Assembly (NCBI RefSeq): GCF_037042905.1
Contig: NC_087251.1
Span: 19,158,001 to 19,222,000 of the forward strand
Length of the DNA stretch: 64,000 bases
Origin: Lytechinus pictus
Taxonomy: Eukaryota
Direction of reading: 5' to 3'
Under the pieces are notes generated by a model. It worked only from the letters and a program-made list of their open reading frames with translations, searched no databases and was not told the DNA's origin. The translations under genes were made by a program, and so were the position numbers. Below are positions 61,301 to 64,000 of this stretch, piece by piece; position 1 is the first letter of the stretch, and each line of letters begins with the position of its first letter.

Positions 61301-64000
61301 TTAGTAATAAGAGCAATCTTACAGCAATCCCAGCGAAATTTTCAAAGTCCAAAAAATTACTGTTATCACCCTGATGAAACCAACATTTTACCCAGTTACA
61401 AACAGGTTGATAAGGGGTAATGGGTAATGTTGAAACGCTTCCATTCCCAGACAGCAAAGTATCTGGATCACATACGGTTCTTATCTGGGATATCTGGGTC
61501 CCATATGGGCCCACATGGAACCCAGATGAAAACATATACTTGAACCCACATGGTGCCCAGATAGGACTCAGATGGAAACGAGACCTCCAACCCATGCGGA
61601 ACCAATTAATATTGGGTAAATGGAGTAATATCAGATGGTAATATCAGGAAAATGCTGGGAATATTAGTTACTCATGAATATTCATTACTACAATAAATGG
61701 CCAAAATTTTAGCTAATATAGCTGTAATAATTAATGTGTATATGTTTATGCAATTATTCCACCCAGAAAATTTTCAGAAAAATGTGTAGTTTATATATCA
61801 TATTAGTCATAATCATGACATTAATTTTAGAAAAATGTTTTAGGGTTGAATAATTGTTAACCATAATTTGTCAAGTGTTGTAAACTCGCTCAATATATAG
61901 AAGTAAATGACAGGGTTTGGTGGATAGGTGTAGGATAGGATTAGGATTAGGATGTAGGATTTTGGGATAGGATAAGATGATATGGCTTAGAGTATGGAGT
62001 TGTAAAAATGTGCTTCAATGACCCTAATGACACTAATTGTTTTTTTAATGAGCCGACATTAATTGGGTAATATTGGGTAAACAGAGTAATATGAGGTGGT
62101 GATATCATTAAAATGCTGGAAATAGTAGTTACATCATACTGAGAAATATTGGGTAAATGGAGTAATATCAGGTCCAGGTAATAAGAGGGAAGGATTGGTC
62201 TACTATTTCCCTGTTATTACCCACTGTTGTTACCGTAGTAATATTCATGTTATTACCTGTTACAACCCGGGTAATGTCAGGTAAAATGCCCAGTGGGAAA
62301 ATAAATAAATTCATTCATTAAGTAGCACCAATACACATATTTTGTACTATTGTTAGCAATTCTCTTTTCTAAAAAAAAAGTTGGATTTGGGTTTGGTGTC
62401 AGGCACCCCCCCCCCCCCCTGTATTGCGGTTTTAGATTTCCAAAAATTTAACCATTGAAGAACACATAAAGGATACTTAAAATTTCTTATTTGTGAAATT
62501 ATCCAACAATACTTCAATACCGAAATTATGGTTATTCCAATTGAATTAAATTTGTATTATTCAAATTGCCTTCTTGCCCGAATTTACAACTTGTCTGGAC
62601 ATGATGCATGTACATACATGTGTGCTTCTTTTTGTTATGTAATGGAAAAACACATTTGTTTGTCTTTCTTCAGCCGAACCACCATAATTTTGAGAAAGAA
62701 AAGTTGAGTAACTATACAATGATCTCAACATAACATCCACGATCATCACATCTGGGCGGAGAAATTCGTACCCTTGACTAATCAGACACTTTATACGATA
62801 CCCTGTTTCAGGTGTTGGCTCTTCTGCTTGCCCGTTACCTTCAGACCTCAATAGCTGGTGCCATAGCCGAGGGAGACCCGGAGGCGCCTACACCAGGATT
62901 CCTATGCCCAGGGGGAGACGGACCACCTCCACCGCCAAAAGGGGACGGCCCAAAACCGAAGAAAGGTGGTGGAGATGTTCCTTTTGGAAAAGATAAAGGT
63001 GGCCTAGGAGGATCCATGGAAGATTTTGAAGATCATGACTTGGATGCTGAAGAAGGGTACGACACTTTACTAGATGATTCGACATTTGATGAAGAATTTG
63101 ATGAGCCCGTCACTGCGTATGCCTCTAATCAGACAAAAAGCTACAATCCATATGAGAACGATGGTCAGTACGGGAGTGAGCCAATCTACGAAAACATTAA
63201 GCCGTACGAGAGTGAACCAATCTACGAAAACATTAATCAGTACGAGAATGAACCAATCTACGAAAACATTAATCAGTACGAAAGTGAGTCCCCTTACGAA
63301 GAACCGATTCGCCGCGACGAAGAACATATCTATGACGACATTCCAGCTTATGTCCCCACGGCAGAGGAAGATCTTTATGAGAATATTCCAGCATATGCCC
63401 CTCCACCAATAGACGACTTTTATGACAACATGCAAGCATATGCTCCAGGGGGCATGGCGGATCTTTATAATACAGCTCCTGATGCGCCGTTGCCTCCTAT
63501 GCTTCCAAGTGGTCCACCAGATGCTCCGATGCCTCCTGCACTTCCAAGTGGTCCTCCACCGAAAAGACCTGGCGGTCCTCCACCAAAGAGACCAGAAGGC
63601 CCTCCACCTCAACGGCCCAAAGGAGCTCCTCCGTCACGCCCAGCTACAGGTCCGCCCAAAAGACCAGACGGCCCACCACCTAGCAAGAAAGCTTCTCCAA
63701 AGAAACAAGCACCTCCTAGACCCAGCAAACCACCATCGCAATCATCTCCGGGTGGAAAAACGAAGGCAGGCAAAAAGGGTCCTCCGAGACCTGACAAACC
63801 TCCATCAAAGAAAACTGGAAGCAAGCAACCAAAAACTAGTACCCCTAAAAAGTCAGCACCAAAACAGAGCCCAAAGAAAAGTGTGAAATCATCTCCAAAA
63901 CGAGGGGGAAGTGCCAGCCCGAGCAAGAAGAAAGTAAGTGCCAAAACGAAGCAGACTAAATCCGCTTCAACGAGAAAGTCCAAGGCAAGTCCTAAATCGA
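58305..64000 (+). CDS. Peripherin-2/ROM1-like tetraspanin, paralog B, with long Tyr/Pro/Lys-rich C-terminal tail (>660 aa, runs off the window)
   Basis: Exons 58305-58867, 60130-60364, 62812->64000. [59 protein letters not shown]...GDPEAPTPGFL; by manual translation exon 3 stays open to 64000. Confidence 0.92.
58999..60100. mobile_element. 1.1-kb MITE with ~240-bp TIRs at a TA(TA) site, in intron 1 of paralog B
   Basis: TATA-CCCAGTTGTTGTGTGTCCGGAC ... GTCCGGACACACAACAACTGGG-TATA. Confidence 0.9.
61059..62297. mobile_element. CCCACTGGGCA-terminated non-autonomous element (CACTA/EnSpm-like) with TTACC/GGTAA sub-repeats
   Basis: TIR CCCACTGGGCA / TGCCCAGTGGG; many TTACC repeats; contains a CCCAGAC.../CCCATATGGG fragment (~61445-61600) and lies inside a poly-G/poly-C MITE (~60955-62430). 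Confidence 0.72.
63166..63288 (+). repeat. 36-bp coding minisatellite (QYESEPIYENIN) x3.4
   Basis: CAGTACGRGARTGARCCAATCTACGAAAACATTAAK-type units in tandem. Confidence 0.95.

Follow-up and report, generated by a model that had tools for sequence, protein, structure and literature searches.

What would a tetraspanin of the peripherin-2/ROM1 (RDS) family do with a tail of approximately 540 residues that carries an array of tyrosines? This question is raised by a gene, designated here as paralog B, at the end of a 64,000-nucleotide stretch of the Lytechinus pictus genome (the window; contig NC_087251.1, forward-strand positions 19,158,001 to 19,222,000, or G000:C7:19158001-19222000, window position 1 being 19158001 in genome numbering). 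The initial annotation read the third exon as an array of EPIYENI-type phosphotyrosine motifs and proposed that this paralog had been converted from a membrane-shaping protein into a signaling scaffold. We find the conservation of the motif to be solid, and infer its biochemical role from the sequence.

Gene model, RDS-family core, and constraint on the tail

Paralog B encodes 817 residues over three plus-strand exons (58305-58867, 60130-60364, and 62812-64464) with canonical splice sites: GT follows 58867 and 60364, and AG precedes 60130 and 62812. Exon 1 (58305..58867), defined by its open reading frame (ORF), GT donor, Pfam match, and similarity to Lytechinus variegatus, contains the start codon, three transmembrane segments (TM1-TM3), and the first half of the large extracellular loop with its CCG motif. 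It ends in phase 2 and is 96.3% identical to exon 1 of L. variegatus. Exon 2 (60130..60364), which has an AG acceptor, a GT donor, a Pfam match, and a counterpart in L. variegatus (96.6% identity), encodes the remaining loop with the PFSCC motif and the start of TM4, and ends in phase 0. The end of TM4, the RYLQTS motif, and the cytoplasmic tail are encoded by exon 3, the in-window part of which (62812..64000) was delimited by its open frame and identity to L. variegatus (96.7-97.0%, with no frameshift). Reading into the flanking genome, the frame remains open from the acceptor at 62812 for 464 bases beyond the window, up to a stop at 64465-64467. The initial annotation stated that this frame was missing from the ORF list, which is true because it runs past the window end and the list omits such ORFs; the exon 3 peptide that it quoted is present letter for letter in the translation from 62812. 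Residue numbers of tail blocks below refer to the 817-residue protein, and P148, Y150, N152, and F92 to exon-3 numbering.

Sequence and structure matches indicate that paralog B is a tetraspanin of the RDS family, as previously annotated. Pfam PF00335 (Tetraspanin) matched exon 1 (E=4.3e-19) and exon 2 (E=3.1e-5), in line with a four-TM tetraspanin fold. When the first 300 residues of a near-identical ortholog were compared with chains of solved structures, the PRPH2 chain 7zw1_A (bovine-type peripherin-2) matched residues 3-297 with E=2.9e-56 and the ROM1 chain 7zw1_B with E=5.8e-33, while the match to CD53 was far weaker (E=6.3e-9). Of the solved relatives, PRPH2 and ROM1 are the closest across the entire core, by a wide margin over other tetraspanins. 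We take the C terminus to be cytoplasmic, from tetraspanin topology and the solved PRPH2-ROM1 structure. Intron 1 of paralog B is in phase 2 and intron 2 in phase 0, which corresponds to an RDS-type gene structure in a comparison of phases, with exact positions left unaligned to vertebrate genes. RDS/ROM genes have a phase-1/phase-2 intron in the loop (4d) and an ancient phase-0 intron 6 (PMC2650405).

Vertebrate PRPH2/ROM1 share with paralog B the four-TM core, the large extracellular loop, the CCG and PFSCC motifs, RYLQTS after TM4, and three coding exons separated by a phase-2 and then a phase-0 intron. However, their tails are approximately 60 residues long, in contrast to approximately 540 in the urchin, and the PRPH2 chain 7zw1_A lacks the tyrosine motifs and the Pro-rich and SPKR-rich blocks of the urchin protein. 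The urchin protein, in turn, lacks an equivalent of PRPH2 Cys150, where the 7zw1_A alignment has a five-residue gap. Cys150 forms the intermolecular disulfide and belongs to the function of vertebrate PRPH2, not to the family at large. The gap lies opposite PRPH2 residues ~145-155 and maps to window positions ~58730-58745.

The tail is coding and under purifying selection. The nearest database protein is an 805-residue protein of L. variegatus (P0001), with 94% identity over the tail, and the three-exon model placed on the L. variegatus locus translates exactly to it. Exons are 96.3-97.0% identical between the two Lytechinus genomes, whereas introns are 82-87% identical and rich in gaps. The ratio of nonsynonymous to synonymous substitution rates (dN/dS; Nei-Gojobori, with dS ~0.1 between the orthologs) was 0.132 for the core, 0.163 for the whole tail, and 0.13 for residues 346-490, and the final 57 codons had no nonsynonymous change. 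The earlier claim of a coding, constrained tyrosine array was, thus, borne out by the exon/intron contrast and by the dN/dS of 0.13. The sole length difference is one 12-residue (in-frame 36-bp) unit fewer in L. variegatus, which confirms the turnover of copy number. The database name of P0001, "trithorax group protein osa-like", is a low-complexity misnomer.

It may be argued that the tail lies outside the functional protein, because of a mis-joined model, an untranslated region, or a decaying gene. No AATAAA or ATTAAA was found within ~1 kb after the stop. When region 58700-64680 was compared with approximately one-quarter of each of three raw-read RNA-seq runs of the species and with one contig set, no reads fell on paralog B exons and none of the three runs supported the 60364->62812 junction; the tissues were unspecified, so this result is not evidence of silence. 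RNA reads in the region matched intronic repeats only, and exon 3 was not found in any indexed RNA run. However, the 551-codon frame is uninterrupted in both Lytechinus species, with the 36-bp indel as their only difference in length, and Diadema shares the three-exon structure with a one-exon tail. The tail dN/dS of 0.16, the presence of relatives' tails on mRNA-sized contigs (P0018 and P0025), and the deposition of an abalone relative as a sperm protein also weigh against a non-functional tail. We regard this explanation as already disfavored and very improbable.

Distribution and origin of the tyrosine motif

Nineteen tyrosines lie within residues 349-485 (Tyr codons 63058-63468), a 137-residue segment with a net charge of approximately -33, in agreement with the "roughly 20 Tyr in acidic context" of the initial annotation. 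The core of the array (63148..63471 on the plus strand; residues 379-486), delimited from the translation, dN/dS, and the alignment, contains 16 tyrosines in 108 residues with a net charge of -24. The protein has three exact EPIYENI motifs, seven YxN sites, and seven YxxPhi sites (Phi, hydrophobic), and EEHIYDDIPAY, EEDLYENIPAY, and DDFYDNMQAY are also present in the array. Tandem Repeats Finder identified the 36-bp (12-residue) plus-strand repeat encoding the EPIYENI units at 63165..63287 (3.4 copies, 89% matches, zero indels), confirming that the motifs have been amplified by this repeat. No second copy of the array was found in this genome; therefore, it is not a dispersed module. AlphaFold2 returned only the TM4 helix for the 551-residue exon-3 product, with a predicted local distance difference test score (pLDDT) below 50 in 436 of 551 residues, from a shallow alignment of seven rows. 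The tail is predicted to be intrinsically disordered, and the combination of three EPIYENI motifs, related sites, and predicted disorder corresponds to an EPIYA-type repeated motif in a disordered segment.

Related tails were found in Strongylocentrotus, Diadema, one sea cucumber, and crinoids, and the orthologs in urchins, the sea cucumber, and crinoids conserve the tyrosine motifs. L. variegatus has two EPIYENI and one LYENI. In Strongylocentrotus purpuratus, for which the only source of the tail was an old chimeric model (P0156; paralog A exons 1-2 joined to paralog B exons 2-3), three LYENI and one LYETI occur in a downstream 15-residue LYENIPAY-type unit, with no EPIYENI array; a current full-length S. 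purpuratus B protein was not found, and a search with the non-repetitive half of the tail recovered L. variegatus only. Diadema has four EP[IV]YANI, and in Diadema antillarum a 36-bp repeat encodes EPIYANIQ units in a gene with a matching three-exon structure, one-exon tail, and tandem A-B pair. The sea cucumber Holothuria has a single PGYENF, and the crinoids Antedon and Anneissia have PIYENL and PIYENM. Since different units have been amplified in different urchins, several Y-x-N-I sites were retained in each. Copy-number variation, which had been anticipated, was observed both between Lytechinus species and across urchins.

Very few columns past the juxtamembrane region are invariant in a seven-species alignment of tails; they include the Phe of an acidic block and P148, Y150, and N152. 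The order of blocks is common to the phylum: acidic-Phe, tyrosine motif, basic K/S-rich, KNRNNN-type motif, and Ser/acidic end, with the sea-cucumber model stopping before the last of these elements. The acidic-Phe block, of the DDSTFDEEFDEP type, was recognized at 63049..63147 (plus strand; residues 346-378) from conservation across tails. It is kept from sea cucumber to sea urchin with an invariant F92 column, and is still recognizable in molluscs.

An exhaustive HMMER search with the core returned 804 relatives, and among the best 150 of these, 69 RDS-family tails of at least 40 residues were used for motif counts. The pattern [ILVM]-Y-[EA]-N-[ILVMF] occurred 30 times in 15 of the 69 tails, and composition-preserving shuffles (n=2000) gave a mean of 0.09 and a maximum of 3. 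Among 43 distinct [ILVM]Yxx[ILVMF] sites, Glu occupied +1 in 22 and Asn occupied +2 in 20, against a background of 5% (binomial p=6e-15, a test that, similar to the shuffles, ignores relatedness among sequences). On these counts, it is Asn at +2 that is specifically conserved.

The carriers span Ambulacraria, Lophotrochozoa, and Ecdysozoa: the brachiopod Lingula anatina (EEPIYENIP), the priapulid Priapulus caudatus (NEPIYANV), the annelid Owenia fusiformis (EEHIYANID), the gastropods Nucella lapillus (ESLYENIP, three times) and Littorina saxatilis (EPIYENI, twice), and the bivalve Sinanodonta woodiana (PLYENV, PLYENL, and PLYENF), in addition to the two transcript-sized contigs P0018 and P0025 (~1.4 kb each). 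The flanking tail sequence is unalignable between them.

This recurrence bears on the simplest functional alternative, namely, that the tail is a low-complexity spacer or a cytoskeleton- or membrane-binding region, in which tyrosine motifs have no specific function and recur through repeats and ancestry. The composition of the exon-3 product is extreme (Pro 17%, Ser 13%, Lys 12%), it has no Pfam domain, it contains 36-, 39-, and 24-bp repeats, and its expression was not detected in the three RNA runs. A mere spacer does not readily account for a five-residue motif that recurs in four protostome phyla and in echinoderms amid unalignable sequence, nor for an invariant P-x-Y-x-N among varying neighbors in an array with a dN/dS of 0.13. 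We consider this alternative improbable.

The maximum-likelihood tree of the core indicates the direction of change. The crinoid proteins, which have a long tail and the motif, are sister to urchin paralog A plus the urchin B group, and each of the two branches involved has a value of 92 in the Shimodaira-Hasegawa-like approximate likelihood ratio test (SH-aLRT). The short-tailed paralog A, therefore, branches within the long-tailed echinoderm group, which makes a long tyrosine-motif tail more likely to be ancestral. The other carriers fall in the largest protostome clade, and fish ROM1, without the motif, is located elsewhere. From this distribution, a tyrosine-motif tail is more likely to have been ancestral to the bilaterian family and repeatedly lost, including in paralog A and vertebrate PRPH2/ROM1, and motif copy number is more likely to be the only lineage-specific trait; the convergent gain of the motif in separate lineages is possible. 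The proposed conversion of this paralog into a scaffold was, thus, not upheld, because crinoid, brachiopod, priapulid, annelid, and mollusc tails already have the motif and the tree favors an ancestral tail. Instead, the RDS family probably began with a signaling or docking tail that was later lost by vertebrates.

Proposed phosphotyrosine docking and its alternatives

We propose, with moderate confidence, that the tail serves as a membrane-anchored, multivalent phosphotyrosine (pY) docking scaffold of the Grb2/Src-family SH2 type. Its core element would be the short linear motif acidic-P-[IL]-Y-[EA]-N-[IVLMF]; the bilaterian ancestor of the RDS family probably had one copy of this motif, which has been multiplied in sea urchins through the tandem duplication of 36-bp and similar units. 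The conserved site has an acidic residue at -3/-4, Pro at -2, Ile/Leu at -1, Glu/Ala at +1, Asn at +2, and Ile/Val/Leu at +3. An aliphatic residue at -1 following acidic residues is a Src/Abl-type substrate context; based on these positions, a Src-family or Abl-type kinase may phosphorylate the array. The pY-x-N core would then recruit Grb2-type SH2 adaptors, since ligands of Grb2-family SH2 domains are characterized by Asn at +2, and the protein has seven YxN sites, with N152 invariant in echinoderms. The kinase-substrate and SH2-docking context suggested previously fits the sequence in these respects, with the conserved Asn at +2 fitting pYxN.

The pY-E-x-I and pY-A-x-I forms may also accept Src-family, Fes, or Csk SH2 domains. 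The former suits the SH2 domains of the Src family and Fes. The latter, which is the Diadema form, suits Csk, similar to the EPIYA sites of Pragmin and CagA (PMC4946704, PMC3593179). Pairs of YxxI sites spaced 12 residues apart may similarly be read, in the manner of an immunoreceptor activation motif, by the tandem SH2 domains of a Syk-type kinase. Moreover, the Pro-rich and basic blocks may contribute SH3/proline-binding and membrane-binding valency. At least 36 SH2 matches are present in this genome; by eye, we take the single-exon domain at G000:C5:16385491-16385709 (L007) to be Csk-like and that at G000:C11:2046497-2046730 (L009) to be similar to a Syk/ZAP70-type N-terminal SH2 domain. 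The Csk-like exon is missing the C-terminal portion of the domain.

In addition to the relatedness that the tests above ignore, several points weigh against a docking scaffold. The strict motif is missing from 54 of the 69 tails and its state on the tree requires eight changes, although well-supported branches force only two. The exons drew no reads from the runs and contig set described above, and exon 3 was absent from the indexed runs. Every YENI/YANI site also fits the phosphorylation-independent YxxPhi consensus and a DxxLL-type signal is located at the tail end, such that trafficking explains part of the same data. Furthermore, we deduce phosphorylation and partner binding from sequence.

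In the main rival reading, the tyrosine motifs are phosphorylation-independent sorting signals of the YxxPhi type that bind the mu subunits of adaptor protein (AP) complexes and, together with DTPLLR (DxxLL, GGA-type) and the acidic-Phe block, direct the traffic of the tetraspanin between Golgi, endosomes, and a lysosome-related or ciliary compartment. Tyrosine-based sorting signals occur in tetraspanin tails, such as GYEVM in CD63. Regular expressions returned the seven YxxPhi matches and one DxxLL three residues from the C terminus, under a loose consensus that does not discriminate; [DE]TPLL[RQ] is kept at the C terminus in four of four sea urchins, and the acidic-Phe block is conserved. 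However, AP mu-subunit binding of YxxPhi does not need Asn at +2, and its recognition leaves the conserved Asn (20 of 43 sites) and Pro at -2 unexplained. One signal would suffice for sorting, yet independent amplifications keep several Y-x-N-I copies. We, therefore, consider sorting on its own to be doubtful. The two readings are compatible, since phosphorylation can switch sites of this type between binding AP-2 and binding SH2 domains.

The spacing of the tyrosines suggests another SH2-based reader. If the 12-residue YxxI spacing represents pairs similar to the immunoreceptor tyrosine-based activation motif (ITAM; YxxI/L, 6-12 residues, YxxI/L), it may be readable by the tandem SH2 domains of Syk- or Shark-type kinases, as in Draper and immunoreceptors. 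The paralog B protein has three ITAM-like matches, with 8-residue spacers in both of those in the EPIYENI array; the 12-residue Tyr-to-Tyr spacing is also found in Diadema, the two YENI sites of Littorina are 7 residues apart, and the genome has the Syk-type N-terminal SH2-like exon noted above. Lytechinus, Diadema, and Littorina, thus, have paired YxxI/L with ITAM spacing, whereas the sites are separated by 11 residues in S. purpuratus and by 5 in Nucella. Only one motif is present in crinoids, the sea cucumber, Lingula, Priapulus, and Owenia; therefore, pairing is probably not ancestral. ITAMs also do not require Asn at +2. An array that acts mainly through ITAM-like pairs, in place of single pYxN sites, appears unlikely to us.

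Two other motif classes were rejected for the tyrosine sites. The immunoreceptor tyrosine-based inhibitory motif needs I/V/L/S at -2, where Pro is found, and an LC3-interacting region fits as [Y]xx[I] after acidic residues, but leaves Asn at +2 unexplained. No NPxY, PPxY, FxDxF, DP[FW], NPF, or [DE]xxxL[LI] matches were found in the paralog B protein by regular expression.

A docking scaffold of this type would have several partial parallels. Bacterial EPIYA effectors (CagA EPIYA, Tarp ENIYE, and Tir EHIYD; PMC3593179) similarly have tandem EPIY-type sites in a disordered region with a copy number that varies between relatives, and tandem expansion raises their SH2 valency (PMC3593179). Diadema has a literal EPIYA (in EPIYANI), and EEHIYDD of Lytechinus resembles Tir. 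However, the effectors are injected through type III or IV secretion, whereas the urchin gene is an endogenous, spliced animal gene for a tetraspanin-anchored protein, and its orthologs form syntenic tandem pairs with paralog A in two further urchins; CagA sites do not have Asn at +2 as a feature. Pragmin (EPIYA) and p140Cap (EPLYA/EGLYA) are endogenous Csk binders of the EPIYA motif class, but are soluble adaptors with one or two sites, in contrast to an integral membrane protein with 4-7 YxN sites; Pragmin has been described as one of few mammalian EPIYA proteins (PMC4946704; PMC3561454). In general architecture, the tail with its membrane anchor, juxtamembrane Cys, and disordered multi-YxN region resembles LAT, NTAL, PAG, and SCIMP. 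LAT, NTAL/LAT2, PAG, and SCIMP are single-TM vertebrate immune adaptors with several pYxN Grb2-type sites; they differ in having one TM rather than four TMs and an RDS-type loop, and there is no homology. Among tetraspanins, CD37 was the only one that we found to have been proposed to signal directly via ITIM-like and ITAM-like tyrosine motifs in its tails (PMC7395052), which are short, have single motifs, and belong to another subfamily.

Literature searches on RDS/peripherin in sea urchin, abalone sperm, amphioxus, and invertebrates yielded no description of such tails, and among the papers listed for the motif string, only names containing those letters were returned. This agrees with the earlier remark that no described RDS-family member of this type was known: many database entries already have such tails, with names that are generic or wrong, and the feature itself appears to be undescribed. 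Research on PRPH2 and ROM1 has been limited almost entirely to their structural role in vertebrate photoreceptor discs. The present results suggest an ancestral RDS form with a long disordered tail and a conserved P-x-Y-x-N, which persists in echinoderms, molluscs, annelids, brachiopods, and priapulids and would have been lost from vertebrates and urchin paralog A. Should the motif serve in phosphotyrosine docking, the tetraspanin itself would be a multivalent tyrosine-kinase adaptor and a natural eukaryotic counterpart of bacterial EPIYA effectors that arose by the same tandem-expansion route. Lytechinus is tractable for knock-outs.

Site of action, remaining tail blocks, and neighboring features

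Mollusc relatives suggest sperm as a site of action, as a lead rather than a finding. A family member of Haliotis rufescens (AGJ90066.1), deposited as "sperm protein", aligns with the urchin protein through the core into the acidic-Phe block, and its SSEHIYHAI site falls opposite EPIYENI. An RDS2-like unigene belongs to the small set of genes specific to the male gonad in two unionid mussels (PMC5800059, Table 2). By analogy, we speculate, as a very long shot, that paralog B is a sperm-membrane tetraspanin whose tail would be phosphorylated by egg Src-family kinases at gamete fusion, and that this Tir/CagA-like scaffold would recruit SH2 proteins, linking fusion to the Src-family kinase/PLC-gamma calcium signal of egg activation. 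To our knowledge, the upstream trigger of this signal in echinoderm eggs is still to be identified.

The tail begins with a Gly/Pro linker (residues 291-345) ahead of the acidic-Phe block. A Pro-rich block with 32 Pro in 74 residues (63472..63693, plus strand; residues 487-560), delimited by composition and repeats, follows the tyrosine array. Tandem Repeats Finder identified PPPKRP-type 24-bp units and one 39-bp repeat in this block, and S. purpuratus keeps it as PPPQKPKGA repeats. PPPKRP-type repeats were rejected as SH3 ligands because they fit neither the class I nor the class II consensus; an SH3-type consensus fits only KQAPPRPSK, KKGPPRPDK, and PPPPPK.

The Lys/Ser/Pro basic block (residues 561-757; net charge +70) starts within the window (63694..64000, plus strand). 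All 14 of the tail's [ST]Px[KR] sites lie within it, among them five SP[KQ]R repeats in direct succession. The block (63694 to ~64284) is similar to the SPKK tails found in the sperm histones of echinoderms, and fits the cyclin-dependent kinase consensus. Beyond the window, the conserved KNRNNN-type motif, which crinoids also have, is located after the basic block and before the Ser/acidic run, and the acidic Ser-rich end (residues 758-817) terminates in DTPLLR. The C-terminal region 64285-64464 (L001:2386-2565) has no amino-acid change relative to L. variegatus. The C terminus is DTPLLR in urchins and ETF in crinoids, which may serve as a DxxLL sorting signal or a PDZ ligand. An ESM Atlas search with the tail returned no usable match.

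Paralog A, the second RDS-family gene (54418-56484, plus strand), is located 3.3 kb upstream of paralog B, with exon 1 starting at 54418, exon 2 at ~55280-55550, and exon 3 ending at 56484. Its tail is short, ends in a hydrophobic stretch, and has no tyrosine motifs. L. variegatus and Diadema also have the A-B tandem pair. The sequence separating exon 2 from exon 3 in paralog A includes a GAT/GAC-rich low-complexity stretch (55886-56277), which reads as poly-Asp on the minus strand and as His/Ser/Pro-rich sequence on the plus strand.

Intron 1 of paralog B contains two copies of an inverted repeat (59104-59241 and 59886-60011) each with a 41-aa ORF; the two ORFs are nearly identical and lie on opposite strands. 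The repeats and other intronic patches are matched partly by RNA reads and high-depth contigs, which then diverge; these partial matches running into unlike sequence, therefore, point to a high-copy dispersed element that is expressed elsewhere.

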